Shown: positions 9,687-59,686 of the stretch, piece after piece
Numbering within the stretch: position 1 is the stretch's first letter
Layout of the letters: the number at the start of each line of letters is the position of its first letter
NCBI GenBank assembly: GCA_039096225.1
Contig: JBBPEB010000005.1
Location: 1,116,001-1,180,000, forward strand
DNA length: 64,000 nt
Source of the DNA: Blastocystis sp. Blastoise
Lineage: Eukaryota > Protista > Bigyra: Opalinata
Direction: 5' to 3'
Position numbers and translations under genes: made by a program
Notes under the pieces: generated by a model
The model's database searches: none
Told to the model about the DNA's origin: nothing
What the model saw: only the letters and a program-made list of their open reading frames with translations

Positions 9687-10750
9687 AGACGTTTCATGTT
9701 AAAATTGAATCCGAATACGAATAAACAAGAAAACACGACAATTATGTTTTCCTTTATTAAAAGATACACAATTCAATTCATCATCAGTAAATACATAGAT
9801 TATAGTTTGTTAGCATCAATAAATAATTATTCCTAAAGAGATCAATGAATTCAAAAGAATTAATTGATGATTTTGGTTTTTATTCCATAGATAATGATTT
9901 AGATTCATTAGACTGGATAATCACAAAATATATAATTCAGAAAAGAAATAGTAATTCTATTCTTGAAGAAAATGAAGCAAATCAAATTCGAAATGTAAGT
10001 CTTTTTTCTTATAAAACAAATAGTAATTAGTTGAAAATATATTTCAAAGTGTATATTATATAATTAGCTTATAATGTGTATAAAACAAAAAGTCATAACT
10101 AATCGAAATCATTTCTTAAAGATATATATTGAGGAGCCAATTATTAGTACATATATTATTTGCAAAAGATATGAAATATAGGCGATGACTTTCATAAAAA
10201 ATTACCAAATAATGAAAAATATGGTATATTTTTGAGGATCTTCTATAGTATTCTATATATAGACATATGGTGTTGTAAGAATTGCTGTTTATATAATCCA
10301 ATTTCTTGTGACCATTGTGTTTATTGCTCATTCTCAAATATATATAATGTATATATATAGTAAAAATCATTTAAATAGTCTTATTAAATTATTTGTATAT
10401 AGAATGTTTCTTATATAATTCACTATTTTGAAAATATATATATAGGGATCTAATGAAAATAGAAAACAACACGAAAAAAATGATGTGATTCTAAAATATA
10501 ATTATTGCTCCATGTAAATATTTATTCAATAATATAGTATTATTTATTATTATATACTGTTATAGGCTATTATTAAAATAGAGTATATAGTATAAAATAC
10601 TATATATAAATACTATATTATTATATAGATGTTATGAGAGAATGAATGAAGTTTGTTTTATACCTTGTGGTCATGTCACGTGCAAAGAATGTTCGAATCG
10701 AATTCCTGAAGTACACAAATGTCCTTTCTGTAAACAAGAAATAGAACAAC
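9687..10750 (+). pseudogene. C3HC4 RING-finger gene, disrupted near its 3' end by CACTA element 1; upstream exon appears frameshifted
   Basis: Exons at about 10445-10512 and 10629-10750 give CSICYERMNEVCFIPCGHVTCKECSNRIPEVHKCPFCKQEIEQ. The original end (QIDIHL*) resumes at 19169-19188. Confidence 0.75.
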
Positions 10751-11876
10751 CACTATGGACATTTTGTGTTTTTTTGACCCTATTTCCCGTAAGAGAAACA
10801 ACAAAATGACTGGGATTTTTTAATCAAAAATACGTTGGCCTAAACTCGAGAAAAGAGTGTCCGCCAACTTGTCAAGTTTCTCTCTTTTTGACGAGAAAAA
10901 CTTAAAAATAACTCTACAAAATATATTGTTTATTTATATAATCATAGACATTCTAAATATTGACTATTTTACAGTGTTTTATGATTTAAAATGACTGTTT
11001 AAAACCAAAAAGACTTTAATTTTTTCTCTGAAGTCTATAATTCAGGAATGGATTACATGAGTGAGAAGTTTTTAAAATTTGTGTATTCTCTGAGTGATAT
11101 ATTATCATTTCAATCATTCTCGTCAAGTCCTTTTACAATATAAACCATTATACAGCCTAAATCAACACACACCTAAAAATTTCTTCTTTTTGATTTCCCA
11201 AGGAAAAAACAATAAAATGACTTGACTTTTTTATTCATAATTTTTTAGCCTAAAGACGACAGCATTCTTTTAGCCAACTACCCTAGAAAGTCAAAACAAT
11301 TAAAAATTCAAAAAAGAAAAGTAAAACAGAAGCTCTTGTTTTTGTTTATTGATTATCGTCAATAAACCTGTTTTTAAAAATATGACTTTAGAATATCATT
11401 CAGGACTTGATTTATAGTTCAGGGTATCGTTTTAAGGTTTAAAATAGCTTTTTTAAGAGAATTCATAATTATGTCCTAAACCAAGAGGAGTTGTGCGTTT
11501 TTATCATCTCTGTTGTTAGGCATACTTATACACAACATACTCAGCTTACAAAATTGTTTTTCCTGCTTGTTGTGATTTCCACTCATTTTTAAATATTTGA
11601 TTTTTAGTTTCAAAAGTTGTATAGAGTCTCTATACATGCCTGTAAGAATCGTTTTTAATAATAAAAAGTCTAAAATATTAAAGAAAAGTGACAGTGAAAA
11701 AAAGGAGGGAAAAAATATTTTTTTGAGTTTCTAGATATTCCCGCAAAAATGATTTTTCTTTTAAGACCTGAATACACCCATACGCTATTGAGCCTATTGA
11801 CTTAGAAAATATTTCATTTGTTACATATTTTTTTTATTTTTATTCTATTTTTATTTGCCTTTATTTTTAAAAATAG

Positions 11877-12329
11877 AAGCTCATTTTAACTTCAGACTGT
11901 TCCCTTGTATGTATATTGCTATTTTTTATTCTTTACCCATATTAACATTCTCCCATTCTCTAGCATGTATAGGTTCCTGCTCGTCCGTGGTTATAAGAGT
12001 CCTCTTCAGTCCATGTCAACAACGTCTATGATGTCAAACTGTTTTTAAAGTATATATGTATTTATTTATTTTTATAATTATCTCTTATCTTTTTATTTTT
12101 TATATTGCTGTAATATTATATGATAAAATACTTATCGTATATTCATTCTATCTATTATTAACTTTCTTTTTTTTTTCTTGAATTAGAATTCTAATTCATT
12201 TTATTATTTATTTTCATTATTTTTATATTTTTATTTATTATTATTTATTTATTTAGGTTGTTTTCTACTGTTTCTGTTGGTTATCTTTCCCTATGACTCA
12301 ACATCACCAAATTCATTTTTTTCTATTAG
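11877..12329 (+). ncRNA. Element-1 spliced exon array 1 (no ORF)
   Basis: GC-richer blocks bounded by AG/GT at about 11877-11907, 11973-12049 and 12257-12329. No continuous reading frame. Transcription is inferred, not shown. Confidence 0.4.
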
Positions 12330-15800
<3,471 letters not shown>

Positions 15801-16063
15801 TGCATTCCTTATTATTATAGATCTCTATATATCTATCTTTGTCATTTATTATAAATTATTTTTCATTTTTTTTATTAATCTCAATAATTAAAGACCCTAT
15901 CTCATTTACTTTATATTTCTTTCTCTTTTATTCTTTTTTACTTCTTTTCCCTTCTTCTAGCATCCTTTTTCACTTATACATATATAAATATATCCTTACA
16001 CATCATACTGACTCATTATTCCTACTATTTTACTTTCATTTATGTATTTTTATTCTATATTAT

Positions 16064-16132
16064 CCTTAAGCTTATATTGGTAAGTATCTATCAGTTTATG
16101 ATAGAAAACAGGTTCAATTCCTGTCTTAAGGT
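16064..16132 (+). ncRNA. tRNA-like cloverleaf (atypical or pseudo-tRNA) inside element 1
   Basis: Stems CCTTAAG/CTTAAGG, CTTA/TAAG, TCTATCA/TGATAGA, and ACAGG-TTCAATT-CCTGT with B-box GGTTCAATTCC. Linker lengths and anticodon loop are non-canonical. Confidence 0.55.
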
Positions 16133-18040
16133 CAATTACATAACTAATTCTTTATATATAGGTATCAATAATTATATTATATTAATTTTTTCAAAAATTA
16201 TCTATTCAAATAGATGAAGATAAATTAGATCAATTACTATTTTTTCTTTACATATGTATTTATTTCATCATTGAATGCATTGATAATATATAGATCAATC
16301 AAAAATAGCATTCAAAATAATCTTTTTAACAAAAAGAGACACAATAACAGTCAATTACTTCTTAAGTGTATTATAAAACAAAATAATCTTCTCAAAAGAT
16401 TATTCAAGTCGTTTTATAATGAGTATATGTGAAAAATTAGTTTAGTTCAAAATAATAATTCTAAATTTTTCAAAATTATATTATCAAATGATTCTGCGTA
16501 ATTTTTTTTTCATATAACCACTATACCCTTTTACACAAGAAAATAATCATTTAAATACATTTTTAAGTTGATAAACAATAAATTAAGAATTTATTCTTGT
16601 TAAAAAACAAAATTCTTAGAAAATATTACTAGAATCATACAAATAATCAATGCAACTATTCAATTATACACCTTTAACGTGATTTAAGACAAGTCATAAA
16701 AATGGAGATTCTCAATATTTTATATTTTTTAACTAATTGATATTTTAATAACTTTTAAACTTCATTTAAACACTAAATATGTAATATAATATGTTTTTGT
16801 CATTTTCGAAATTAGAATATGTATTTCAAATAATTTTAGTTTTACTAAAAATCACTTAAAATGAATACACAGAGTTTGTAGACAATAAATAAATTATGAA
16901 TAAAACTATATATCGATATAAGACTTTTTTTGACAAAAAAGTGATTTTTGCATTTGTTTTATAATAAACTATCAACACGACTCCGACTATTCAACTAAAA
17001 ATATATAAAATATGATTTTTGTTTGTTTATACGTATATTTGATAATAGTAAGTCCTTGAATACTAGAAAAAGTTCTTGCTGAGTAATTATAAAATACTAT
17101 TTTGATTTGTTTTTGATATTATTTAAATGAAAAACACTATTTGCATGAAAAAACGCTTACCTTATGTATATCAAGTCTATTTAAAGGTATTAGAAGACTT
17201 TAACTTGATTTCAATTATTGCTTTAATTCACTTTAAAAATATTTTTTCCACTCTCTTTGTCATATTGTGATAATAAATTAATAAAAAATCGGGACAAATA
17301 CATTAAAAAGATAATATTTCATAACATTTTCGACTCTAGACCTTTTTATCTTCATTTTCTTTATTTTATCATTTTATTGAAGATATGTGATTTAAACTGA
17401 TTCTTTAATTAATGATTCAGGCAATCATTCTGGATTATATAAATGACTTTTATTCTGGAAATAGAAGTTTCAGAGTCTTCTCTATAAGTCTGTATTGTAA
17501 CCTATATTTATTTTTTAAAAGACTTATACTTACTGAGTGATACTAAAAATAATTTTGACAATTAAGGATAAAAATCACTCTTCCATAGTCAAAACTGATT
17601 ATAAAATGATATAATGATAAATAACTATATAATTCTTTAAAATAAAACAATTTTTGTATTACTTATGATAATTATGATAAATTGAAAATAACAATAACAA
17701 TATCCATTTTCCTCATAGAAATAAAATTTTTCTTTCTCTTTTATTCTTAACCATTCATTTCATTTATGATGAAGATTCTCTATATTTAGTAGATATGAGA
17801 TTATTCATGTTTATTTTCATTATTTCAGCTATATCTTCTAAATTCCTATTACACCCTTTTATAACAAAACAAAATGCTACATGACTTATCACATATTTAT
17901 TTTATTATATCTTATATGATTAATATGATATATTATTAAATTATTACTTTATTTCATATCATATGATACTATTATGATGGTAGGTGTTTGCTGTTTCTTT
18001 ATATTTTATTTTTTTCTACTCTACTCATTCATTTTCTATA

Positions 18041-18646
18041 GTAGCTGTCTCTGCTTGGTGTTTTGACACTTGCTGGTCTCCTTAAACGTTCTGGTCCTTC
18101 TTGTGTGTGGTCGTGGCTCTCTTATAGATGGGTTCTTTAGGTCTAGAATGGAAGGAATCAATGTTAAAAGAAGGTATATATCATCTATATTATCTATTAC
18201 ATATTATATAACTAACCCCACTTTATATTTATATAGCATTAATGTATATATTTATATTTTATTATTCTATATTAATTTACTTTATTATATATTATTATAT
18301 TATATAACTTACTCTATCTTTATATAGGTTTCCATAAGTTCTGTTGCTGTCGTTGTTGGCCAATTGGAGAGAATGGTTTATAAAAAGTATATATATATAT
18401 TTAATTATATTGTTTTATTCATTATACTATTTATCATATATCTTTTATAGGATGGTTCTTTGTCTTTGATTCCTTGCCTGTCTTGTAATGATTAGAAAAG
18501 GTATATATTTTTTATTTTATTATTATTTTAAAATGTTATATATATATTATTATTAGTAATACTTAACTAATATCATCTCTTTATATAGGTTGGTTAGGCT
18601 TAAATGCAAATTAAAGACTGAAACTGTCCTGGTTGAAATATTATAA
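18041..18646 (+). ncRNA. Element-1 spliced exon array 2 (no ORF)
   Basis: AG/GT-bounded exons at about 18041-18173, 18327-18386, 18451-18500 and 18589 onward. CTTGCTGGT...GGTCCT resembles CTTACTGGT...GGTCCT in the arrays of elements 2 and 3. Confidence 0.5.
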
Positions 18647-18937
18647 ATTAAATATTATATATATTTTATTATATTATTTATTATATGTTTTATTATCTTT
18701 TTATATATTTATTATTATTGTTTTCTATTATTTGTTTTTATGATTATTTGATAATATTTAATTTGTTTGTTTTGTTATATCGTTTATTATTACACCACAA
18801 AAAGAATAAAAAAAGCCAATAAATGAAAAAATAGAGAATATTTAAAACCATTTTTATTCGCCAATTATTGTTTTAAGGTGCGTCATACTTTTGCACTGCT
18901 TTTCGATTTTATAAAATCACTGAAACTCTGACAAAAA

Positions 18938-19140
18938 ATTTCACTGCTCACCACTGGGGAAACCAAAGCAAAAAAGTCGTTGGACCTTTTGTCAGCTACC
19001 CTTTAAAATTTTTTCACTGCTCCACCACTGGGGAAACCAAACAGAAAAATCAAATAACCTTTTGTCAGCTACATATTTAAAAATTTTCACTGCTCACCAC
19101 TGGGGAAACCAAAACAAAAAAGTCGTTGGACCTTTTGACA
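18938..19140 (+). repeat. Three subterminal tandem repeats of about 72 bp (TTTCACTGCTCACCACTGGGGAAACCAAA...CCTTTTG)
   Basis: Copies at about 18939, 19012 and 19086, next to the right TIR of element 1. Confidence 0.9.
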
Positions 19141-19567
19141 GAAACCTGAAAAAATGTCCATAGTGAACAAATTGATATACATCTGTAAAATTATAATAAT
19201 AATAATTATATATGTATATTCTTTATTATGATCTGTATTATTATTAATATATATTAATAACATGTTTTTCTTTCTATCGTTATACTAACACTATCAGGTA
19301 TTCCCGTGATACTTTTTGGAGAGTTTTGCCAAAAAATGACTAAATTACTTTTTAAGACTATTTTCAGTCAGGCGAAAAGAGTAGCCAAAAACTAGGTTAT
19401 TTTTGTCGAATATGGTCTTTCTTTTCATTCGTTCAGAATTCTTTTAGAAACGTCATTTTATTATTAATTTAATCGTTGTGTGAATGATAATCAATATATA
19501 TATATAACAAAAGACAATAAATAATATATAATAATTAAAATAGCAAGAAAGATAAGAAAATAATAAT

Positions 19568-20073
19568 TATTTTGATTTGTTTTGATAAATTGGCAACTGT
19601 ATCTGAGGACTATATATATAAATTGATAGAACTAATAATAATATAGATAATATAGAATACATACCTTCTAACATCACTTCTAGACCAACTCTTGAACAAG
19701 AACCAAAACTATAAAAATAGAATGTAAAAAAATAAATATATTATAACAATATACCTTCTAAATCCTAGCAGTGTAGACCAAAAGGGACACCAGAGAGTAC
19801 CTAGAACCTATAAAAAATTAAATTAGTTAATTTCAAAAAAATAAAATATAATTAAATACCTTCAGAAGCATTGATTTGTTGACCAAGGAGACCTGAGACA
19901 ATAGTTGAACCTATATAAGATAATAAATAATAATAGCAGAGAGAATGCTAAAAAATATATACCTTTAATACAACCAGATTTCTATACGTTCAGGCCCGGA
20001 AACTCATAAACTAACTTTAAAAAAGAAGACCAATTAGGACCTATTAGAATCTATTTTGACACACCAGTAAGCC
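19568..20073 (-). ncRNA. Element-2 spliced exon array 2 (5 exons, no intact ORF)
   Basis: Five AG/GT-bounded exons. Same exon-intron layout as 26570-27078. Confidence 0.55.
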
Positions 20074-21069
20074 TATATAGAATAAGATAAATAAAAAAAA
20101 TATTATATACATTTAATAATATATAAAATATAGTTGTAAATTAAAGAAAAATAAAAATAAATATGCGAAAAAGTTGAATCTTATAAACAAAGAGAAATTC
20201 CCCCTTACAATTTTTTTTTTGTATGATAAAATTCTTTACAAAATCTGGGTTTCCAGGGGTTAAAACATTTTTAAATTTTCCCTTTTTCTCTAATAAAAAG
20301 TCTATTTGAATATAAAAATGATTTATAAATGTAATATGTGTTTATGAACCTAAATTATTTAATTACAACATGTTTAAGACTTATTAGAACAAAAATATAG
20401 TTATTTAAAAAATCTTTAATTACAATTAAATATATTTGTCTGCTATTTTTATATAATAGTATTTTATTTATAACAAGAAGGTCCTAGATAATCAAGAGAA
20501 ATATTTAGTATAATCACTTATAGAGACATGATTCAAAATTTATAAACTTTTGTTTCTAATATGATTTATTTCAACAATTTATCGATTATTGTAGATGTAT
20601 AAATAAAACGAGAATGTTTGAAAGCTTTGTGAGTTGTTTAAGACATAATAAAGAATGTAATTTATTAAAGTATAAAGTAGATTAATATTTACTCTTTTTT
20701 CTATTATTCCAAAAGAATTCTATAAATAATTTTATTCCTAAATATCAACAAAACAAATAGAGTAATATATAAAGAAATAAAACAAAATAAAAGATAGATA
20801 AAAAAGATAATATATAGTATATATATAGTAATATATCATTATAATATATATAATATGAATAATTTATTAAACTCCTTTCTATTCTATATATACATGATTA
20901 TAAAACCATATATAATTTAAATATATATATATATTGATATAGTATTATAAATATATATATATACAAGAGTTATCATTATCTTAATACATAAAGGAATCAT
21001 CCAAAAGTTTATATAATAATAATAATATAATAATAGTAATAACAATAAGTATATAATATATATATATAT

Positions 21070-22771
21070 ATACAAGATATATAATAACCATGTTTCTGAT
21101 AATCATGGTTATCAATAAGGAACATAAAACGTGAGTATTATAGGAGGTATATAGTTGTATATATATGTTTTATATGGTGGTAATTCTTCAAATAGATAAT
21201 GATCCTTTTTCTGTAGTTTGTATGGAATTGTAATAACTATATATATATATATATATTATATCAAAATATAATAATAAAGTATATATATAAATATATAATA
21301 TCACGAGAACAATAAAGTATATATATATATACTTGAGAAATTCTAGAATAAGTATTTCCCACGATTATAATTCATAAAGACAACACGCTACTCTTAGTAG
21401 GGAAGATGAAGTAGGAGATAACAGGATAACAGTATATAACCACGGGGATAATTAAGTATATCCTATAAAATATGTAATAAGAAAATCATGTGACATAAGT
21501 AGCTGATAGAGGGATTCAAACATTCATAGAATACATATATTCTATATAATAATAATAATAATAATAACAATAATAATATATATATATATATATATATATA
21601 CAAAGTCATCCAGTATATTTATATCATATATATCTTCTTATCCGCGGTTTTCAGTCGGTTACGAAGAGAATATACATATTGAACATCAATAGCTATATAT
21701 ATTATATAATATAATAATAATAATAATACACACAATAATATATACAATAAATATAATGTAACTATAATAAAACCATAATAAATACAAAACATACAATGAT
21801 CATTATCTTCTTCTCTTTTTCCTATATAAGTAAACATATCTATCATTTCTTTTTCTTTTTTCTTTCCTGTTTCTTCTTCACCTTCAATTTCAACCGTATT
21901 CAGTATATGACTTAATCCATAAATCAGTTCTCCACTAGGTTTTTCTTCTCCTTCTCCTCTTTCTTTCTCTTCATATGTATTCATTAATCCTATTTCTTCT
22001 TCTTCAGGTACTTCCATATCATTATCAATCATCAAATCATTTCCTGTATCTTTATATGCACCTGTGAAATAATTAGTAGTAGGAGGAGGAGGAAAAGGAG
22101 GACTATAGACTTCTTTTAAACTATTATGACTCATAAAAAAGGAAATAGAATAAATATCAATCTTTTTAATGTATGTAACTGAGGAGGTATATAAGAAGAA
22201 GGACAACGAGCTATTTGTATAATTTCTTCTATTCTTGTTAATAAGGTATATATCATATCTTGAGGAATATAATTCAATTCATATATATATAGACTTACTA
22301 ATATTGTTTCTCTTCTTTGTATTATATATAATAATATGATATAATATTATAAGTAAGAAACGAGATAGTACAGTATATGAATTGAAATGGATTTCAAAGG
22401 AAGGTTTAAAAGCATAATAAACTGAAGAATAATTTAAAACACTTATATAAATATATTGCATTCTTTAACCATGTTGTTAAGAAGTAGCTCTCCGATTTAT
22501 AAAGTGGAATCAATGAGAATATCACGTGCTTTTCTTCATTTGATTCGGGAGTACAAATACATCCTTAACGGAAAATATACTCACCAACTGTTTTCTATAA
22601 TAATAATAAGAATGTTATTATAATACATAATATATACAATAGAATTTCGAATAGAATCAGGAATAGGTTGTGATTCAGGGATGTCATTTATATATATAAC
22701 TAACAATTTTACTTAATACTTTAATACTCTATAAATAATATGAATATAAGTATATATATATATGTATAATT

Positions 22772-22802
<31 letters not shown>

Positions 22803-23703
22803 AGTATATATAAATATATACTTGTACTGTACATATATCAACACTTGTATTTAATAATAAACTTTGTAAATATTCACGTTCTATATATAAGAATATATAA
22901 TAATAAAAAGCATAATACTATATATATATATACGTTGATTAGGGAAGAAAGGGAGTAGTTGACATATAATGGTAGTTGCTTGAATGTATTCATATATACT
23001 GCTATTATGAACAGCTTCATAAAATATATCAATATCCTTATTTGTTAACTATATATATAAGAATAAGAATATGTATATATATAATAATAAGAATAGAATA
23101 ATAAGTAAATACAGGGATAACAGTGCATATATATTGAAGAAGAGAGAGAGACAATCGTAACGTTTCTGTATTTAAACACTGTTGGAATAACACATCTAAT
23201 ATATCCTATATATAATAAGTAACATATATATAAGTAATATATATAGATAGTTATATATACTCTGTCTCGTATATATTGAACAAGTGATTTATAAATAGCA
23301 GATTTCTTTACCGTTTGAAGATCATTAAATAATGTAGTTAAATTCGTTATTCCATCAATTTTATTTTTCATGTTTGATCTCATCAACTTATATATATATA
23401 TATTAATATATAATTTTTGATAATCATAAGGATCTTGATAACTATATATATATATATATATATTAATAATATAATAAATCATAATTACATTTTTCGTTTT
23501 TCAGCAAATTTCAGTGTATTTGTATATTCATCAACATCAATTTGGCGGGGAAAATCACTTGGTAAAAATTTTTATAAACTATATATATATACATTTCATT
23601 ACAAATAGTAACAAGTGAAGGAAGAGAAGTAAGTATATAAATATATATGCTTAATTTATACATAGAGAATAAGTATTCAAACTATATATATAATAATAAT
23701 AAT

Positions 23704-23749
<46 letters not shown>

Positions 23750-24460
23750 TTTTCCAAAGTCGATATCTGCCCATAATGATTGTAATACATTCATATATTC
23801 ATATAAAGAGGTTTCAATAGCTTTATATAAAAAACTATAGGGTTTACAATAATATCGTTTATCTGTATATTCCTCGACAAATGATTTGAGTTTCGTACTG
23901 AGAATGGGGTCTGTTGGAGGGGGATTGAAGGGAGTCACCAGACGATCACGTGCTGGAATTTCTTTTAGAATCGTATATGAACCTTGAGGTAAATCAAAAA
24001 TAAATGCTCTATTATCACTATTTCGTATAAGTGAATATGTATATTTATCAGAAATGGGGGAGTAAGAAAGATCTATTATGGTATAAATCTGTTTGTCCTG
24101 ATGATAATAAATAAGTAAATTCTTATCATGAGATGTATTGGTTAGTACAAGTGACGCATCTAGATGACGCTCCAGGTAAGGAAATGGCTCTACTCTATAA
24201 TAATATATAATATATAATATATGTATAATAATAAATAACAAATAATATATATATATATATATATACATATCAACTTGAATATCTTCTAATCCATAAATAT
24301 CTGCTTGTGTATATCCATCTTAATAAACTCTGTATATATTCTTATATATACCTCTCTCTTCAAAGAAATCAAGCACTATTCCCGTGATTGTATAATTATC
24401 ATTAACATGAATAGACATATAGAGACCAATATCCTTTGTAAAATCAGTCTTTTTAATTTT
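21070..24460 (-). pseudogene. Captured intron-containing host-like gene fragments (cargo of element 2)
   Basis: Exons such as VEPFPYLERHLDAS...WADIDFGKD, FLPSDFPRQIDVDEY and EVYSPPFPPPPTTNYFTGAYKD. Several frameshifts. Homologous to 28025-31320. Confidence 0.7.
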
Positions 24461-24900
24461 TAAAGAACACACCAGCAACCTAATTCACCAATGGCAACTA
24501 AAAAGCACCTTCCTATATAATATAATATATAATAAACATATACTAAAAATAGAGTAAATTAAAAAAAGAATAAAAGAATATTGTAACATAGGAAAAGAGA
24601 AAAAAGAAAAATATCTAAATGCAAAGAAAAAAAAATATATAATTATATACCTTCTAGACTTTGTTAATTGATTATTTGAAGTACCGACAAGACCTAATAA
24701 ACAACCTAAAAAAATTAAAAATAAACAAATGTAATAAAATACCTTATAAGAAAAAACCCAACAAGTACACATGATGAACCACTTTGAAACCGACCTGGGA
24801 GAATATCTGTCAGGAAAAGGATTTACACAATGGAAAACTAAAAAGAATTATGAAAAAAAGTAGAAAATATCTAATAAATAAATACTTATAAAGTGCATAC
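24461..24900 (-). ncRNA. Element-2 spliced exon array 1, running into the cargo
   Basis: AG/GT-bounded exons at about 24743-24837, 24651-24705 and from about 24512. Homologous to 32718-32983. Confidence 0.45.
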
Positions 24901-25936
24901 CTGTATAAAAAACACCATAAATAAGTATAAAAATATCTATATATGTTTGGTTATAATAATTTAAAAATAAAGATGAATTCACTAATATAATAAAATTTGT
25001 TAGTCAAATACTAAAAATTTTCGTAAAAATAGCTTTTATATTTTTTTTTAATTTTTTATGACTCACTACTAAAATTACAAGTTTTAAACGTTATGTACTG
25101 AGCTATTGACACAACACTATTGTATCTCACTACTTTCAAGTTTTAAAAAATTACTCATTTTTGTTGACTCTCTGATCTGTTGACTGACTCGTCTAAAAAC
25201 TATTAATTTTGACTTAAAACGATTGCATGCTACATAATTAACTCTAAAAGTGACTTTATAAAAGACTTTTATTTGATTCTGAGGAAAAGTAGTTTTTTTA
25301 GAAGTTTTGGCATACTCTTTGTATGCGGAACTTTAAGTCATAATAAAATCAAATGAAAAAACTCTTCTAAAACACTTATATCCTCTGATAGTCAATAAAA
25401 TATAAATAGACTCAGTTTTGAACGAGAAAAATATTCCCGTAAATATTTTAAAAATTCAAAACTCTGGTCTGACTGCCCATGGAACAAATAGGCTCGGCTC
25501 AATTTTTCAGTGTAAAAAAAATATAATTTTTTGACTTTTTGGCTGAATTTTGGTTTCGAACCATAGAGGTCTTTTTATTCATTTTTAATTATATATGTGA
25601 CTCTGAGAGGGTCTTCACTTTAAACACAACTATAAAATATTTTAAAATATTGACCCTCATTTTCTTCAGAATTGCGACTTTAAAATAAATAAAAACGGTT
25701 TGGATATCGTGTGATCCTCTGTAAATAAAAAATATTGTCAATTCTTTAATAAAATATGTTTAATAGGGTTTTTGTGTCTAAATCAAAAGTCGACTTAAAA
25801 TTTTTATGAAAATTTTGTTTTTTTTTGCCTAAGTCTTTTTTTTGTTATAATTTTATTGGCTGAATAAGTTTTGAACGAAAATTAACCAATCAAAAAGCTT
25901 TAAAAATTAAAAATGACCTGGTAGTGTAATAATACT

Positions 25937-26347
25937 CACTAGTAGGCATTTTGTTTTTTAGTAAAAAAATCTATCTAATGGGTAACCAAAACCTTATCTA
26001 AAAAAAGGGCTATTTTCTTATCTAACGACAAAAAATCTTCTCTAACCATATGCCAGGAAGTTATCTAACACGTCTGACCCAGCTGGCATCTTTTTTTTTA
26101 AGAGCAGTTTTTGGTGTTTTTCTTTTCTAACACAAGGCAAATATATGTCTATTCACTAGTAGGCATTTTGTTTTTAGTAAAAAAATCTATCTATTGGGTA
26201 ACAAAACCTTATCTAAAAATGAGCCATTTTCTTCTCTAACCATATGCCAGGAAGTTATCTAACACGTCTGACACAGCTGGCATCTTTTTTTTTAAGAGCA
26301 GTTTTTGGTGTTTTTCTTTTCTAACACAAGGCAAATATATGTCTATT
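25937..26347 (+). repeat. Tandem duplication of the left end of element 3 (217 bp + 194 bp), each copy starting with the TIR
   Basis: CACTAGTAGGCATTTTG at 25937 and 26154. Both copies end ATATATGTCTATT. Confidence 0.92.
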
Positions 26348-26569
26348 TGTATTTTATCTGCTCTAAAGGTATCTATATTTTTCTCTAATACATATTTTAA
26401 ACACATTATCATGTATTTTTAAGATAAAATTTGGGTGCTATTTGTTGGATAAAACCTGTCTTATTTATTTAATTAATCGTTGTGTGAATGATAATTAAAA
26501 TTATATTAACAAAAGACAATAAATAATAATAAAATAATTATAACAATAATAAAGATAAGAAAATAATAG

Positions 26570-27078
26570 TTATTTTGATTTGTTTTGAGTAATTTGATAA
26601 CATTTTGGATCACTATAAATATATAAATGATAGGAATGATAATAATATAGATAATATATAATATATACCTTGTAATGAAACTTCTAAAGCGACTCCATGA
26701 AGAAAAACCACAACTATAAAAATATATTGAATAAAAAATAATATAATATAGCAATATACCTTCTCAATCCAAATAGTGTGGACCAGGTAAGACCTCAGAG
26801 AACACCCATTATCTTTAGAAAAAAAAAATAGTTAATTTCAAAAAATATTAATATAATTAAATACCTTTAGAACCATGAAGTTGTCGACTAGGGAGACCTC
26901 CTACAACATCTGAACCTATAGAAGATAATATTAATAAAAAAACTACAACAATGGAAAAAAATATACCTTTTATAGCACCGGATTTCGGATCACCTAAACC
27001 ACACAACTCATGAGTTAACTTTAAAATATGAAGAGGAATCAGGACCTATTTGAAGCTATTTCGACGGACCAGTAAGCC
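26570..27078 (-). ncRNA. Element-3 spliced exon array 2 (5 exons, no intact ORF)
   Basis: Paralogue of 19568-20073 with conserved splice sites and diverged exon sequence. Confidence 0.55.
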
Positions 27079-28024
27079 TATATGATATAAAATAAATAAA
27101 TTATATAGTATACATTTTAAAAACTATATAAAATAGTTGCGAATCAATTAAAAATAAAAATAAATATGAAATTTTTTAGAATTTATTTTAAAAATACATA
27201 CATGGCCCTAAAAATACAGAAAATCTTTTTTTTTCTATAATAAAAGTCTCTATAAATTTCTTTATTTCCAGGGGTTATCAAATCTCTAAAATTCTCCTTT
27301 TTTCTACTAAAACGTCTATTTGAATGCTAAATTGAGTTATAAATGTATTTTATATGTATTAAGCTAGATTACTTCATTACAACATGTTTCTAGACTTAAA
27401 AGAACAAAAAATTGTTATTTTTAACAGAATGTAATTTCAATTTAAAATATTTGTGAGTAATATATATATAATAGTATTTGATTCATAATATAAATGCCAT
27501 AGAGAATAAAAATATATATTTGACATAGTTGTTTATAACCTCATTATTCACATTTTACGAACATTTTTATTATAATATATTTTATTTTAATGGATTGTTG
27601 ATATTACAAGTAAGTGAATGAATTGAGAAGGTTTGCAAGTTGTTATCAACATAAAATAATAAAATCTAATAAAAATATAAACAGGATTAATACGTATTCC
27701 ATTTTACTATTATTCGAAAAGAATTCTTTACAATAATCTCATTCTATAATATTTACAAAACAAAATGAATAATATATAATTAAATATAACATAATAGAAG
27801 ACATATATAAAAGTTAATAGACAATAAAAATATATATATGTATATGACTTCTTTCTTTATCCTATATAAATTAATTATAAAAATATCTATAATTTAGTAT
27901 ATATATATATATGACATTTTTCATCATCTACAATATACAAAGCGCATTATCTATCAGTCTATATAACATATATAATAATAAAATAAAAATATTAAATATA
28001 ATAAGTATAATAGTATATATATAT

Positions 28025-28483
28025 ACAAGACATATAATAATGTTTTGATAATTATGGTTTTCAATGAGGGATATAAAACGCTGGTATTATAGGAGGTATG
28101 TAGCAGTATATATATTGATGTATCTGTAGTTCATAAGTATATAATAAGCCTTGTTTGTAGTATGTCTAATATCTATCTATATATATATATATATATATAA
28201 TATAATTAATAACAAATATAAAATAGTAAATAATATATAATATGCTACATCAAAAGTTATATAAAGTGAATATATATATACATAATTAAAATATTCTTGA
28301 GAGTAAGTATTTCCCGCGATTATTGATTTATAAAGACAACAAGCCACTGTAAGGAGGGATGATGAAGGAGAAGATAATAGGAAAGTAGTATATAACCACG
28401 GGAATAATTAAGTATATCTAATAAAATATTTTATAAGAAGACCATATAAGTAGATGAAGAAAGATTCACATATCTATAGATTG

Positions 28484-28537
<54 letters not shown>

Positions 28538-29768
28538 GTAATAATAATAATAATAATATATACAAATTCACCTAGTGTCTTCATATCATATCTATCTTCT
28601 TTATTCGTGGCTTTCAGTTGATTACGAAGAAGAGAATATACATATTGCACATCAATAGCTATATATTATACAGAATATTAATAATAAGAAGAAGTATAAT
28701 AATAATATATAAAATAAATATAATAAACATAACAAACATACAATGATCATTTTCTTCTTCTCGCTTTCCTATATAAGTAAATATATCTATCATTTCTTTT
28801 TCTTTTTTCTTTCCTATTTCTTCTCACCTTCAATTTCAACAGTATTCAGTATATAACTCAATTCATAAATCAGTTCACCAATAGGTTTTTCTTCTCCTTC
28901 TCCTCTTTCTTTCTCTTCATAAGTATTCATTAATCCTATTTCTTCTTCTTCAGGTACTTCCATATCATCATCATCCATTAAATCATTTTCTATATCTTTA
29001 TATGCACCTGTGAAATAATTAGTAAGAGGAGGAGGAGGAAAAGGAGGACTATAGACTTCTAAACTATTATGGCTCATATTAAAGGAAATAGAATAAATAT
29101 CAATCTTTTTTAATGTATGTAATTTAGGAAGTATATAAGAAGAAGGACAACGAGCTATTTGTATAATCTCTGCTATTCTTGTTAATAATGTATACATAAT
29201 ATCTTGAGGAATAGAATTCGATTCATATATATATATAGACTTACTAATATTATTTCTCTTCTTTGTATTATATATAATAATATGATATAATATTATAGTA
29301 AGAAACGAGATAGTAAGGTATATAACTGAAATGGATTTCAGAGAAGGTTCAAAAGTATATAATAAATTGAAGAATGATTTATAACCATCATTTAAATATA
29401 TTGCATTCTTAAACCATGTTGTTAAGAAGTCTATAATAATATATAATAATAATAATAATATATATATATATATATATATACAAAGCTATCTGATTTATAA
29501 AGTGGAATCAATGGAATATCACGTGCTTTTCTTCATTTGATTCGGGAGTACAAATACATCCTTAACGGAAAATATACTCACCAACTGTTTTCTATAATAA
29601 TAATAAGAATGTTATTATAATACATAATATATACAATAGAATTTCGAATAGAATCAGGAATAGGTTGTGATTCAGGGATGTCATTTAAATATAATACTAG
29701 CAATTTACTTATACCTTAATACTCTATATATAATATGAATATAAGTATTTATATATATGTATAAGTAT

Positions 29769-29821
<53 letters not shown>

Positions 29822-30415
29822 AGTATATATATATATATACTTGTACTGTACATATATTATCACATGTATTCAATAATAAACTTTGTAAATATTCACGTTC
29901 TATATATAATAATAAGTATAATTCTATATATATATACGTTGATTAGGGAAGAGAGGGAGTAGTTGACATATAATGGTAGTTGCTTGAATGGATTCATATA
30001 TACGGTTATTATGAGCAGCCTCATAAAATATATCAATATCCTTATTTGTTAACTATATATATAAGAATATATATATATATATAATAATAATAATAAAGAA
30101 TATAATAATAATAAGTAAATACAAGGATAGCAGTACATATATATTGAAGAAGAGAGAGAGAGACAATCGTAACGTTTGTGTATTTAAACACTGTTGGAAT
30201 AATACATCTAATATATCCTATATATAATAAGTAATATATATATATAGTTATATATACTCTGTCTCGTATGTATTGAACAAGTGATTTATAAATAGCAGAT
30301 TTCTTTATCGTTTGAAGATCATGAAATAATGTAGTTAAATTAGTTATTCCATATATATATATATATATATAAAATTATTATATACATCAATTCTATTTTA
30401 AATATTTGATCTCAT

Positions 30416-30467
<52 letters not shown>

Positions 30468-31491
30468 TGATAATCATAAGGATCTTGATAACTATATATA
30501 TATATAAATAAATCATAATAAAAACTAATAATAATTACATTTTTCGTTTTTCAGCAAATTTCAGTGTATTAATATATTCATCAACATCAATTTGGCGGGG
30601 AAAATCACTTGGTAAAAAATTTTAATAACTATATATATAATAATAATAAATACACCATAATATATATATATATATATATATGTATACACCTTTCATTACA
30701 AATAGTTTCAAGTGAAGGAAGAGAGTAACTATATATATATATATATATATGCTTAATTTATACATAGAAAATAAGTATTCAAACTATATATGTAATAACA
30801 GTAATAACATATTTAATATATATATATATACATCTTTTCCAAGGTTAACATCTGCCAATAATAGTTGTAATACAGTTATATATTCATATAAAGAAGCCTC
30901 TATAGATTTATATAAAGAGTAATAATATTAATAATAATGTAGTTTATCTCTATATACCTCAACATATAACTTGAGGTACATACAGAGAATAGTGTCCGTT
31001 AAAGTGGAGATTGAGGGAGTCACGAGATGATCACATGATGAAATATCTAGAATCTTCTATATATCTGGATGTACATCGAAACTATAAATAAGTATTTATA
31101 TAAAACCTATTATCATTATTATATATAAGTGCATAATATTAATTAGAAACAAAGGATTAAAAAATATGTTATCATATAAATACCATATATATATATAATA
31201 TAAATAATATACTTTTTATTCTTATAGTAATAAGTAAGTTGTTATTTCGAATGTATATTGTAAGAATAAATGACGAAAAGAAATGATACATCAGGTAACA
31301 AAATAGCTTGAATCTATAGATTGATAATTAATAGAATAATAAACTAAAAGATAATTATAATAATAATAAATAAATTTACTTGAATATTCTATTATCTATA
31401 AATCTTCACATATTTATATCAATTGAAATAAGTTCAATAGCTATTCTTACATATAATTCTAATCATAAAACAAGTTGTATCTCATATTCTA

Positions 31492-31522
<31 letters not shown>

Positions 31523-32580
31523 CAATGAATAGATATAGATATAGAAACTAATATTCTTATAGTTTTTGTATATATACTAATAAACTAAAATATAATTATA
31601 ATTAAACGTATAATAATAAAGATTATAATATATAATAATATATAAACATATATATACTTGATTGAGTTCCACATGTTCTAGAAGCAAAGAATATAGATAT
31701 AGAATAGGTGATTCCAGGAATAAGACCTAATTTATCTGCATAATTCGTTATATTAATATGAGAACCAACTGGAGTATTATAACTATATATATAATAATAA
31801 TATATAAAATATAATATATACCCTCCATAATCTAAGAATAAATGTTTATTAATAAAAACCCATAATCCATTATTCGTTTCAAAATCTATAAATTGATCTG
31901 TTCTATTCTCATATCTATATATATAATAATAATATTATATAAATATAAAATAATAATATACAAGAAGAATAGATTTGTTTTCATAGTAAATTAATATTTC
32001 TTACCAATATATTCTTCTATTGAACTTAATGCATATCCTCCTTTTACATCTGTTAAAGGAAAATATGTAGGACTAGAAGATATAAAAAATTATAGAATAT
32101 ATATATATATATAAATATATATATATATAAATATACGAGAAATAGCAACAAAAGCCCGAATATTATTATCACCATAATCGTTCACTTTATCACATACTGT
32201 TTCTACTCTATCTTCTTTTGAATATAAATTTGAATATATATATCTATATAAAAAAATATAATAATAATAAATATAAAATATATACTTTGGATAATTTGAA
32301 GGTTGTTTCGTAATAAAATTATCTGTATAATGAATAATACAATCACGAATAGCAAATCCTTTCTCATCTATATATATATAATATATAAATGTTATATATA
32401 ATAAACAAATAAATAAATTCTTATATTAATAATATAATTAAATAGATAAAAATAAATAATTAAATATATATAAATAAACATATATATATACAAACTATTT
32501 TACAACTGATATCGTATTTGGTATTTGAAAATATCAGAGAAACCACAAGATTCAAGAATGGAGTAAGAAATAACTTTTCT
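28025..32580 (-). pseudogene. Captured intron-containing gene fragments (cargo of element 3), including a fibro-slime/PA14-like domain at about 31657-32075
   Basis: Spliced YENRTDQFIDFETNNGLWVFINKHLFLDYGG/YNTPVGSHINITNYADKLGLIPGITYSISIFFASRTCGTQS. Preceded by YFPL...Y*FT with an in-frame stop, and a frameshift further upstream. Confidence 0.7.
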
Positions 32581-32717
32581 ATATAATATATAAATTGAAA
32601 ATATATATAAAATATGAATAGAGTAACTAAAAATCAAATGAATATTTTTGATAGGAAAAGAGAAAAAAGAGAAAATGTGCCAATGCAATATAAAATTAAA
32701 TAGATACATCTATATAC

Positions 32718-32983
32718 GCTCTATATTGTCTTGACTTGTTATTTAGAAGAAGTACTGACGAGAATAACCAAGAAATCTAAGAGAATAAAAAAAGAAATGT
32801 AATAAAATACCTTATAATAAATAAACCCACAAGTCTCTGTTATGGACCTTTCTAAAACTAGTCAAGGAGAATGTCTGAAAGGAAGAGGATATCCAGAATC
32901 GAAAACCTATAAGAATGACGTAAAACACTATGATAAATTTTATAAATAAATACTAACACATTATGAACACTGCTTAGAAACAT
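32718..32983 (-). ncRNA. Element-3 spliced exon array 1
   Basis: AG/GT-bounded exons homologous to 24461-24900 (shared CAGAYATTCTCC and TATAAG/GTATTTTATTACATTT). Confidence 0.45.
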
Positions 32984-33524
32984 CTATAATAACTGTAATC
33001 AGTTCTAATTTGTTCATATAAACAACAAATTTAAAAATATATATATGAATTCATAATTCATTTCTAATTTTTCAAATTTTATCCTTTCTTAAAAAACCAG
33101 AAGTCTGTCTAAATTTTAAAAGTATGTCTAAAAAAAAGGCGAGAACGCTTTGGTGCGTTTTCGTTATCTAACGTGACCCAAAAATATATCTAACGCGAAA
33201 AACGTGCCTACTAGTGACTATTATCAAAAGAGATAACAATAGTATTATATATATATAAGAATATTGCTATCTAGTTATAGTTTTCTTTATATAAAAGGTT
33301 TTTGTGGTGAACCATTAGGATATTTTTTGCATATATATTAATGTAATCCACAATTTTATAAAAAATATCATTTAAATTTCATAACTATATGCATTAGTTT
33401 TATATAATAAGCTAGAATAACAAAAACAAATGATATATAATTGAATGAATGTTTTGTTTTAAACAAATTGTATGTGACACTAATAATAATAATATGAGAA
33501 GAACGTGATGTAATTATTTTTTAT

Positions 33525-57064: not shown

Positions 57065-59686
57065 ATGTCTACCATCGATGAACCCTTTGCTCAGAATTCT
57101 GAAGATTCTATTGATGATCAAAATGAGAAATCAAACGAGGAAAAACGTAATTATGTTCATCCCCATGCCTGTTGCGTCTGCCATTATTATGATCCACTTT
57201 CTTGTGTTCAATGTCAAGATTGTGGAAAATGGTTTTGTAATGTAAAAACCAGTGCGATGGGATCTCATATCTATTCTCATCTTCGTATATTAAAGCATGG
57301 AACAGTGTCCTTAGAACCAAAAAATCCAAATGGTCCAGTACAAATTTGTTGCCAACAATGTAATAAGACAAACGTATTTAATCTAGGTTGCTATACAGAT
57401 CATGAAACAAAAGAAATTAAAATTGTCTGTGGTTCTGAATGTTTCAAGAAACTAATTCAAAACAATAAAATTGAAGCATCAGAATATATACCTATTATTC
57501 GAGAAAATATGATTATTGCTCCTTTCCTTCGTCGTTATAATCAATATTTAGCTAGTGCTTCTTATTTAAAAGTGTCTGACGATCAAGTTTATGAACTTAA
57601 TAATACATGGAGAACAAATCCTATAGTTAGTATTGATGAAATTCTACCTGGTCGTTTTATTCAAAAAGATCCAAAAGCTGTACCTATTAAGTTTGATAGT
57701 CTACGTCAATATCGAATGATTTTTTCTGATTTAATTATGATGGAACAACAATATGAAATCAATCGATCCAGAACTGATATTATCTTAGTCACTATTTCAT
57801 GGAATACATTAGAAACAAAGAATAAGGATTCTATTATGGAAATGATTATTAATCGAAAAGAAAATCCTATTGAAAATGCATATAAACGTGGTTGTGCATT
57901 CCAATTTGCTCTTCCTAAACAAGGAAACCTCACAAAAGCTGATTTTATCTTAGAAGGATATGTATATGATAGTTATAAAAATAATTTAATTATTCATTTT
58001 TATAATAATGCTTCTCTTACCGAGAGTATTTTAAGTCAAAATACGTTTTATCTTCGTGTTACACCTGGTTTAATTGAATTTGAACGTATGCAAAGATCAT
58101 TAAGCGATTGTAGTGATACTTATTTACTTTCAAATCAATTACAACAAATATTATTAGGAAGTAAAACGATTCAATATGATGATTTTAATAGTTATGTTCC
58201 TAAAGGATTGAATGTAAGTGGTTTTGTCAAAGCAAATCCCTCTCAAGAATTTGCTGTGAATCAAGCGTTAAAAATGCCGTTAACGATTATTCAAGGACCC
58301 CCTGGTACAGGTAAAACAGTAACTAGTACATTAATCATAAAGAAATTATTAGAAAAAAATCCTAATGAAAAGATACTGGTATGTGCTCCTTCTAATGTTG
58401 GTGTCGATACTTTATATAAGAAGTTATGTCAATGTAATATAAAATGTTTACGTGTATTATCACATACATTAGAAATTGAAGATAAATATAAAGATATTCC
58501 ATGTTTACATAATATTGCAGAGGATAATTTACCAACTGATGAATTAAAACAATCTTATTATAATTTAAGAAATAAATTATCTATTGATGGGGATGAACGT
58601 TCAAAATTAATGAAATCTTTAAATCCTTTAAAATTAAAGATTATTAATGAATATCCAGTTATTTGTTGTACTTGTTGTACTGCTGGGGATGAGATATTTG
58701 ATGAAATAAGATTTCCCACGGTTTTAATTGATGAAGCTGCACAATCCGTAGAACCTCTTTCACTTATACCTCTTAGTCATGGATGTAAACAATTCATTTT
58801 AGTAGGAGATGATCAACAATTAGCTGCAGTTATTAAAAGTAAAAAAGCAGCAAATTTAAATTTTGGTCAATCTTTATTTAATCGTTTACGTTTAACAGGT
58901 ACAATTCCTATTTGTTTACGTGTTCAATATAGAATGCATCCTTCCATTTCTTCTTTTTCAAATACTAACTTTTATTCGAATATTCTTATTAATGCTGAAA
59001 ATACATTAAAACTTCATTCAGGTCCTTTCCCTTGGCCTCAAAAAGACAATGGAATTCCAATAATGTTTTGGAACTTTTCATCTTTTGAAGAAATCCCTCC
59101 TAACGGAAAATCATATTATAATCGTACAGAAGCTTATAAAATAGTAGAGATAGTTCAATTTTTACAGAAGAATAAGGTAGATTCTAATAAGATTGGTATT
59201 ATTACTCCTTATAATGCTCAAAAGGATATGTTACAAGATTTAATTCAACCAGATAAAGTTGTAGGTGCTTTTAGTCGAATTTGGGCTGATGGTATTGAAA
59301 TTGATACAGTTGATGGATTTCAAGGTAAAGAAAAAGATTATATTATATTTTCATGTGTACGTTCAAATGAAGAAAAAGGAATTGGTTTCTTAAATAATTA
59401 TAGACGATTGAATGTAGGATTAACTCGTGCTAAATATGGATTAATTTTACTTGGAAATGTTATTAGTTTAAATAAAAATTATTTATGGAGTTTATTATTA
59501 CACTATTATTTAAGTTTAAATGTTATTGTAAATGGTCGATTTGGAAAATTCACATTATTTGAAGATCAATTACCTATTACTCCTGATCCTAAAACAATTA
59601 AAGATAATAATAATAATAATGATAATAATAATAATAATAGTAATGATAAGAATAGTGATAATGATAATGATAATGATGAATCATAA
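57065..59686 (+). CDS. UPF1: UPF1-like SF1 RNA helicase (CH zinc domain plus helicase), single exon, divergent
   Basis: HACCVC...CGKWFCN...GSHIYSHL, IQGPPGTGKT, LVCAPSN, LIDEAAQ, QYRMHP, TVDGFQGKEKD, RRLNVGLTRAKYG. Confidence 0.85.
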   Translation: MSTIDEPFAQNSEDSIDDQNEKSNEEKRNYVHPHACCVCHYYDPLSCVQCQDCGKWFCNVKTSAMGSHIYSHLRILKHGTVSLEPKNPNGPVQICCQQCNKTNVFNLGCYTDHETKEIKIVCGSECFKKLIQNNKIEASEYIPIIRENMIIAPFLRRYNQYLASASYLKVSDDQVYELNNTWRTNPIVSIDEILPGRFIQKDPKAVPIKFDSLRQYRMIFSDLIMMEQQYEINRSRTDIILVTISWNTLETKNKDSIMEMIINRKENPIENAYKRGCAFQFALPKQGNLTKADFILEGYVYDSYKNNLIIHFYNNASLTESILSQNTFYLRVTPGLIEFERMQRSLSDCSDTYLLSNQLQQILLGSKTIQYDDFNSYVPKGLNVSGFVKANPSQEFAVNQALKMPLTIIQGPPGTGKTVTSTLIIKKLLEKNPNEKILVCAPSNVGVDTLYKKLCQCNIKCLRVLSHTLEIEDKYKDIPCLHNIAEDNLPTDELKQSYYNLRNKLSIDGDERSKLMKSLNPLKLKIINEYPVICCTCCTAGDEIFDEIRFPTVLIDEAAQSVEPLSLIPLSHGCKQFILVGDDQQLAAVIKSKKAANLNFGQSLFNRLRLTGTIPICLRVQYRMHPSISSFSNTNFYSNILINAENTLKLHSGPFPWPQKDNGIPIMFWNFSSFEEIPPNGKSYYNRTEAYKIVEIVQFLQKNKVDSNKIGIITPYNAQKDMLQDLIQPDKVVGAFSRIWADGIEIDTVDGFQGKEKDYIIFSCVRSNEEKGIGFLNNYRRLNVGLTRAKYGLILLGNVISLNKNYLWSLLLHYYLSLNVIVNGRFGKFTLFEDQLPITPDPKTIKDNNNNNDNNNNNSNDKNSDNDNDNDES

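Follow-up and report, generated by a model that had tools for sequence, protein, structure and literature searches.

Maize En/Spm and dSpm elements have CACTA...TAGTG termini with short, family-specific terminal inverted repeats (TIRs), are flanked by 3-bp target-site duplications (TSDs), and contain subterminal repeats. Their autonomous copies carry a Transposase_21 (TnpD-like) gene, and the commoner non-autonomous copies have the same termini. Across the CMC (CACTA/En-Spm) superfamily the TSD is 3 bp long, with a range of 2 to 4 bp. Some non-autonomous elements of plants also carry fragments of genes, and to our knowledge this Pack-TYPE capture has been studied almost only in plants, where its mechanism is still deduced from rare intermediates. 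By definition, a Pack-TYPE element is a TIR element that is non-autonomous and has taken up DNA of coding genes (PMC8903248). In Arabidopsis, Pack-CACTA1a forms closely spaced arrays, mostly of direct repeats, with copies 38 to 2137 bp apart and up to three per gene; it also undergoes terminal deletions, from which the formation of hybrid elements capturing the intervening DNA has been proposed (PMC6379663). Here we describe a stack of three elements, named E1, E2, and E3, in a stretch of 64,000 nucleotides of Blastocystis sp. Blastoise, hereafter called the window (assembly GCA_039096225.1, contig JBBPEB010000005.1, positions 1,116,001 to 1,180,000 of the forward strand). They are very probably three different non-autonomous CACTA elements, of which E3 is Pack-CACTA-like.

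The Blastocystis elements share with En/Spm and dSpm all the features listed above, and the autonomous copies also have a weak match to DUF4218 (E 0.005). They differ in their host, a stramenopile gut protist with a GC content of 23%, in the 2-bp TSDs of a quarter of the E1-type copies, and in having a conserved non-coding subterminal module of 1.5 kb. Moreover, no TnpA-like protein was recognized in Blastocystis, and the transposases, which are very diverse (24 to 54% identity across the compared loci), score only marginally above the Pfam cut-off. Plant Pack-CACTA elements (PMC6379663, PMC8903248) are alike in being non-autonomous, bounded by TIRs and TSDs, and provided with a coding-gene fragment that includes introns. 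Their carriers are also mobile, with several copies showing different TSDs, and they too include hybrids with common interiors and different ends as well as a chimeric gene model. Close spacing is a further common trait, with 38 to 2137 bp in Arabidopsis and three insertions inside 130 bp in Blastocystis. In contrast, only E3 has such cargo in the Blastocystis stack, and the elements are larger (6.6 to 8.4 kb). The neighbors come from different TIR families, whereas those of Arabidopsis are tandem copies of one element, and, with orientation taken from the transposase of the partner elements, E1 seems to face the opposite way from E2 and E3. The host is not a plant, and capture is deduced rather than observed. 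Rice and maize Pack-MULEs are comparable in that gene fragments are transduplicated by non-autonomous TIR elements and give chimeric transcripts, but they belong to another superfamily (Mutator, with 9-bp TSDs and long TIRs). The CACTA elements described here thus belong to a known superfamily, and what is new is their occurrence in an organism whose transposons are undescribed. They go unmentioned in the genome paper, where transposable elements are given as bulk percentages only (5.6 to 7.5% in tortoise isolates; PMC10690189).

E1 occupies positions 10751 to 19165 of the window (plus strand, 8,415 bp), with a TIR, CACTATGGACATTTT, that matches at 15 of 15 positions (10751-10765 and 19151-19165), and is flanked by the TSD AAC (10748-10750, right copy at 19166-19168). 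E2 (19289-25926, plus strand, 6,638 bp) has an 11-bp TIR, CACTATCAGGT versus CACTACCAGGT, that matches at 10 of 11 positions, and the TSD TAA (19286-19288 and 25927-25929). In E3 (25937-33216, plus strand, 7,280 bp) the TIR is CACTAGTAGGCA, matching at 12 of 13 positions, and the TSD is ACT (25934-25936 and 33217-33219). All three have CACTA...TAGTG ends; E1 is separated from E2 by 123 bp and E2 from E3 by 10 bp. An earlier note on this stretch had described the elements with these coordinates, ends, TIRs of 11 to 15 bp, TSDs, and spacers, all of which were reproduced. With the inserts taken out, each along with one of its TSD copies, all insertion points fall inside 130 bp of the original sequence. 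When the window, whose GC content is 19 to 28%, was scanned for CACTA...TAGTG pairs with a TIR of at least 10/11 and an exact 3-bp TSD, E1, E2, and E3 were the sole pairs in 64 kb; the mean over 200 dinucleotide shuffles was 0.24 pairs. One pair alone may therefore be due to chance, and the decisive evidence comes from the copies of the elements elsewhere in the genome.

These copies were searched in the assembly (label G000; 33.34 Mb in 34 contigs), in which the stack lies at C31:1126751-1149216. The 15-mer TIR of E1 occurred 56 times (28 forward and 28 reverse), and its reversed control not once; the 12-mer of E3 was found 45 times versus 4 for the reversed control, and the 11-mer of E2 27 times versus 5. 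Pairing of the ends gave 25 E1-type pairs, 19 of them with an exact 3-bp TSD and 6 with a 2-bp TSD, in which the last two bases of the left flank equal the first two of the right flank. E3-type ends gave 14 pairs with perfect 3-bp TSDs, in sizes from 6.7 to 28.8 kb, and E2-type ends four TSD-matched pairs, counting the one in the window. The TSDs of the copies varied and were mostly AT-rich, without clear consensus. The first 600 bp of E1 matched about 38 places in the genome, and eleven other copies were 100% identical to it; the same identity was seen in at least 17 copies for its last 400 bp. The 5' 600 bp of E2 were 100% identical in five other copies, and those of E3 98 to 99% identical in seven. 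All three families, for which the earlier note had suggested such a search, are thus multicopy and nearly identical among copies, which points to recent movement. Judged from these identities and from the independent insertions carrying their own TSDs, the E1, E2, and E3 families are recently mobile, and the copies that are 100% identical over the compared parts imply very recent activity. Three larger units, C24:351410-373427 (22 kb), C18:5391-34242 (28.8 kb), and C8:1842342-1862874 (20.5 kb), also had exact E1- or E3-type TIRs and 3-bp TSDs that matched; each may be a composite or nested element mobilized as a unit.

None of the three elements carries a transposase, neither a six-frame search with the transposase of the family nor one with Pfam Transposase_21 (PF02992) giving any match inside C31:1126751-1149216. 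This indicates that E1, E2, and E3 are non-autonomous, and bears out the earlier statement that they have no transposase open reading frame (ORF). Elsewhere in the genome, four loci exceeded the PF02992 cut-off, with open frames of 744 to 758 codons. The scores in the partner elements, 29.6 to 31.9 bits for a cut-off of 28.6, were marginally above it, and the domain is also precomputed on two annotated proteins (P0001 and P0002). The six-frame search with the family transposase retrieved more than 50 loci at 24 to 54% identity, most of them with open frames of about 560 to 1,600 codons. Since elements with the same TIRs as those of the window carry Transposase_21 genes, the assignment to the CACTA/En-Spm (CMC) superfamily holds, and the search for autonomous relatives with CACTA transposase domains provided candidates for E1 and E3. 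The candidate partner of E1 (C23:362896-378401, 15.5 kb, TSD CAT) has the exact 15-bp TIR of E1 at both ends, is 90% identical to E1 over the first 163 bp and 93% over the last 380 bp, and contains an uninterrupted transposase exon of 737 codons, annotated as P0002 (917 amino acids). That of E3 (C8:2015452-2031433, 16 kb, TSD AAT) has the TIR of E3 and encloses a transposase match. Another autonomous family, here called B (12.1 kb; e.g., C23:197275-209383, with TIR CACTACCGTCGTTTT and TSD ATT), is the closest autonomous relative of E2, to which it is linked by the common 1.5-kb subterminal module. The KDZ transposase domain (PF18758) had no match in the genome. Transib (5-bp TSD) and PIF/Harbinger (TWA TSD), considered for CACTATG-type ends with short TSDs, were excluded by the length and variety of the TSDs and by the Transposase_21 partners.

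E1 splits a RING-finger gene (10629-10750 and 19166-19188) six codons before its stop, leaving the RING motif intact. Joining position 10750 to 19169 restores the end of the exon, ...CPFCKQEIEQQIDIHL-stop, and thus reconstructs the empty site. With E1 present, the frame of the gene continues for 19 codons into the element and then meets a new stop. The 123-bp host spacer between E1 and E2 (19166-19288, plus strand) consists of the displaced last six codons and stop (19186-19188), followed by AT-rich 3' sequence, and E2 and E3 sit in the 3' flank of the gene. The placement of the stack between two convergent genes, made in the earlier note, is therefore only partly right, since E1 lies inside the last codons of the RING-finger gene. 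Ends of different elements were 0 to 143 bp apart in the window and at three other loci, among about 60 elements of the three TIR types. On C23, 62 bp separate an E1 copy from the autonomous element; at C13:909068-926219, two E1 copies stand head to tail and abut at 917646/917647, where the upstream match ends 3 bases short; and on C5, a solo E3-type end is found at a distance of 143 bp from a complete copy with matched TSDs. Random placement of about 60 elements in 33 Mb would give fewer than 0.2 neighbor pairs, a rough estimate rather than a genome-wide test. The most likely reason for such tight stacking is that these elements tend to insert beside resident CACTA ends. The near-abutting ends at the three other loci agree with the insertion hotspot proposed earlier, which is plausible, although they do not separate targeting from other causes. 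Targeting of transfer RNA (tRNA) genes was excluded, since ARAGORN found no tRNA in the window; neither ARAGORN nor Rfam supports a tRNA-like cloverleaf at 16064-16132, within E1.

Selection rather than targeting would produce similar clusters if insertions were random and survived only at a few tolerated sites, for instance existing transposons or the 3' ends of genes that converge. In favor of this, 8,547 genes are packed into a compact genome of 33.3 Mb, intergenic distances in tortoise isolates have a median of 645 to 719 bp (PMC10690189), two of the three elements were inserted into intergenic DNA at a 3' side, and contigs such as C15 and C28 bear many closely grouped matches to transposases or elements. 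However, E1 interrupts a coding region, so the site is not neutral. Moreover, the four loci with spacings of 0 to 143 bp contrast with the fewer than 0.2 pairs expected, even with about 300 possible neighbors in this rough estimate, and a tolerated space that is two- to three-fold smaller cannot yield that excess. We consider selection alone an unlikely explanation, and a preference of the elements for resident CACTA ends remains our reading of the stack.

The interior of E1 contains a pyrimidine-rich, low-complexity tract of about 3.6 kb (12300-15900, plus strand) made of TTC, TCTA, and similar tandem repeats. Its plus strand is almost pure pyrimidine (GC skew of -0.75 to -0.85 and AT skew of -0.53 to -0.59), and the ORFs of the tract are stop-free artefacts of a sequence of T and C only. 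Outside the tract the interior is AT-rich and showed no convincing coding pieces. A 73-bp unit is repeated 2.9 times in the 3' subterminal region (18933-19141, plus strand). Beyond its ends, E1 is unrelated to its candidate partner on C23 (in a comparison that covered the partner up to its 3' 3.1 kb). The full-length copies, measured from paired coordinates, are about 8.83 or 8.55 kb long, and the window copy is a mosaic of these two subfamilies. Over the 5' 600 bp it agrees fully (100%) with the 8.83-kb subfamily; in the interior, identity is 97 to 99% with the 8.55-kb subfamily but no more than 85% with the 8.83-kb one. The difference in length between this copy and the others may lie in the pyrimidine tract.

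Although their ends are unrelated, E2 and E3 align collinearly for about 4.9 kb, with an identity of 77%. Their common part consists of a non-coding module and a minus-strand, intron-split gene. In E2 the module forms a conserved 5' region (19351-21058, plus strand), whose counterpart in E3 lies at 26461-27912. It is 72 to 77% identical between E2 and both E3 and an element on C28; compared with autonomous family B, the identity is 80% for E2 and 72% for E3. Its substitutions show no codon periodicity, and it was therefore treated as non-coding. No Rfam family matched at the gathering threshold in 10600-24190 or 24240-33400. CACTA families of both kinds, autonomous and non-autonomous, share the module with at least 30 further loci at 72 to 81% conservation, and it is much longer than usual subterminal regions. 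At its 5' end, E3 has two tandem copies of the terminus with its TIR (25937-26346, plus strand), each unit being about 200 bp long (25937-26153 and 26154-26346). Both units serve as ends of E3-type elements, the outer one in eight copies of the family and the inner one in at least six.

The intron-split gene of E2 (21622-24772, minus strand) is annotated as WA158_007681 (P0010, 571 amino acids), and its counterpart in E3 as WA158_007682 (P0014, 556 amino acids). This cargo gene was searched exon by exon or else through the annotated database proteins. It has thirteen annotated paralogues, all from this genome and all "hypothetical," and transposon cargo accounts for at least 13 of the hypothetical proteins in the annotation. 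Wherever its exons matched the genome, an E2- or E3-type end was a few kilobases away, that is, the gene was found inside such elements only. For one exon, weak matches (59 to 61% over about 45 residues) were seen at seven subtelomeric sites near contig ends. Pfam and NCBIfam searches with the single exons of the E2 and E3 genes and with the models P0003, P0004, and P0006 gave nothing except one sub-threshold fibro-slime match. A phmmer search of the largest cargo exon against 1.84 billion representative sequences retrieved this genome's own models and immunoglobulin-like repeats only; the latter matches (E 5e-7 to 5e-5) were weak and are not trusted. HEAT/ARM-like clusters appeared with low scores only (0.82) in a language-model look-alike search, and were discarded. 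The AlphaFold model of P0003 had a mean pLDDT (predicted local distance difference test) of 35.6, which is unusable for a fold search. Another paralogue, P0016 (WA158_005882, on contig C23), bears a precomputed PF13358 (DDE_3) domain, which hints that in this model the cargo gene has been fused with another transposon.

E3 contains, besides this gene, a fragment of a subtelomeric, multicopy, fibro-slime-like gene (31649-32425, minus strand), about 0.8 kb long and including exons and introns. Over that stretch alone, E3 is 86 to 96% identical to five loci (L013, L014, L015, L018, and L019), the last four of which share 7.2 to 8.5 kb with L013 at about 95%. The L013-type loci, on C14, C26, C16, and C31, each hold a long multi-exon gene on one strand of about 8.4 kb and, like the further matches to the fragment, all lie near contig ends, with at least nine such copies. 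From this long multi-exon gene and its copies we infer that the family is probably a host family. The window E3 lacks an internal piece of about 375 bp of the parent that is kept in P0006, the model of another element. The fragment and the intron-split gene are joined in the annotated chimeric gene WA158_007682 (28090-32573, minus strand, a span given by the outermost tblastn matches and including the match of the first exon of P0006 at 32478-32573). In its model P0014, the fibro-slime-like fragment accounts for roughly 157 N-terminal residues, and the C-terminal exons of the orphan gene for the remainder; such chimeras appear in the public gene models P0014, P0006, and P0016. E3-type copies bearing the fragment, each with its own perfect TSD, were also found at C16:1433300-1440894, C23:301944-309039, C29:636954-644150, and C13:330172-339749, and the fragment occurs as well in the C28 element, whose TIRs are of the E2 type. 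These observations support E3 being a Pack-TYPE element by the definition given above, with a parent family that is presumably non-mobile. The earlier claim of Pack-type cargo, or host-like gene fragments, in all three elements is therefore sustained for E3, through the match to the 8.4-kb multicopy gene. It is unsupported for E1, in the searched part of which no gene fragment was found; nor did a search with 15950-18750 retrieve a copy other than those of the E1 family. For E2, whose cargo is the orphan gene, host origin is neither supported nor contradicted.

If the interiors were genuine transposon genes and the 8.4-kb units themselves mobile, the three elements would be ordinary deletion or recombination derivatives rather than Pack-type ones. 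This would account for the confinement of the orphan gene to elements, for the fibro-slime-like piece in the C28 element, and for the 95% or so identity of the 8.4-kb units in at least five copies, which is typical of repeats. Yet neither CACTA-type termini nor clean common boundaries are seen around the units; some groups among them have extended flanks in common, like segmental paralogues, and all are placed near contig ends. The elements, moreover, hold only 0.8 to 1.2 kb of the unit, to extents that differ between them (P0006 versus the window E3), which is the pattern expected for a captured fragment. We therefore judge transposon genes an improbable source of the interiors, slightly more so than selection as the cause of the spacing, and capture by E3 the better account. 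Collapse or chaining of repeat copies at one locus is a very remote prospect, since, despite the near identity of all three elements to copies elsewhere, each has its own matching 3-bp TSD, the flanks join into uninterrupted host sequence when the inserts are taken out, the window E1 is a unique mosaic to which no other copy is identical over its whole length, and the long-read assembly is described as contiguous, in 33 contigs (isolate Rus-B, from a Russian tortoise; 33.3 Mb, 23.1% GC; PMC10690189).

Taken together, the stack probably formed by successive insertion of E1, E2, and E3 into 130 bp at the 3' end of the RING-finger gene, each element duplicating its own 3-bp target. Autonomous relatives would recognize the family-specific CACTA termini and move the elements in trans, the C23 partner acting on E1 and the C8 partner on E3. 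E2 and E3 probably descend from a common non-autonomous ancestor carrying the orphan intron-containing gene, and the lineage of E3 would then have acquired part of the subtelomeric fibro-slime-like gene and swapped both ends. E3 would thereby have become a Pack-CACTA-like transduplicating element with an annotated chimeric gene. For plants, it has been proposed that hybrid elements able to capture cargo originate from stacking of this kind. Some observations weigh against this scenario. Among the loci seen, no autonomous element had the exact TIR of E2, and it is from the shared termini only that we infer mobilization of E1 and E3 by their putative partners. The exon pair of the captured fragment matched the fibro-slime model TIGR02148 (E 2e-8) with 34.5 bits, below the 45-bit cut-off; a genome-wide search with this model is uninformative because introns split the domain. 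The fibro-slime-like family could itself lie within a mobile or duplicating block, and the adjacency of the elements could result in part from purifying selection leaving few tolerated sites in a compact genome.

Agreement with the hybrid-capture scheme of Arabidopsis is seen in the stack, in the C13 copies that abut, and in the C5 solo end, as well as in the duplicated terminus of E3, the swapped ends of E2 and E3, the mosaic E1, and the C28 hybrid. A more tentative extension, which we find possible though rather doubtful, is that the elements home to resident CACTA ends, build hybrids by end-swapping or partial deletion, and fuse exons of subtelomeric, probably surface-exposed gene families. 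If true, Pack-type exon shuffling would be currently active in a culturable unicellular eukaryote outside plants, and all the proposed intermediates (abutting copies, solo ends, duplicated termini, and hybrids) would be present in one genome. A fast-growing protist with stacked, abutting, duplicated-end, and end-swapped elements and an annotated chimera would offer a second, independent system for the mechanism of capture. The transposons of Blastocystis have been essentially undescribed, and the present results reveal a large and diverse CACTA population and identify candidate autonomous partners.

Elsewhere in the window, the ORF at 57065-59686 is intron-free and 873 codons long, and by eye resembles a UPF1-type RNA helicase that ends in a poly-Asn/Asp tail. 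The ORFs that neighbor it likewise contain long runs of Asn.

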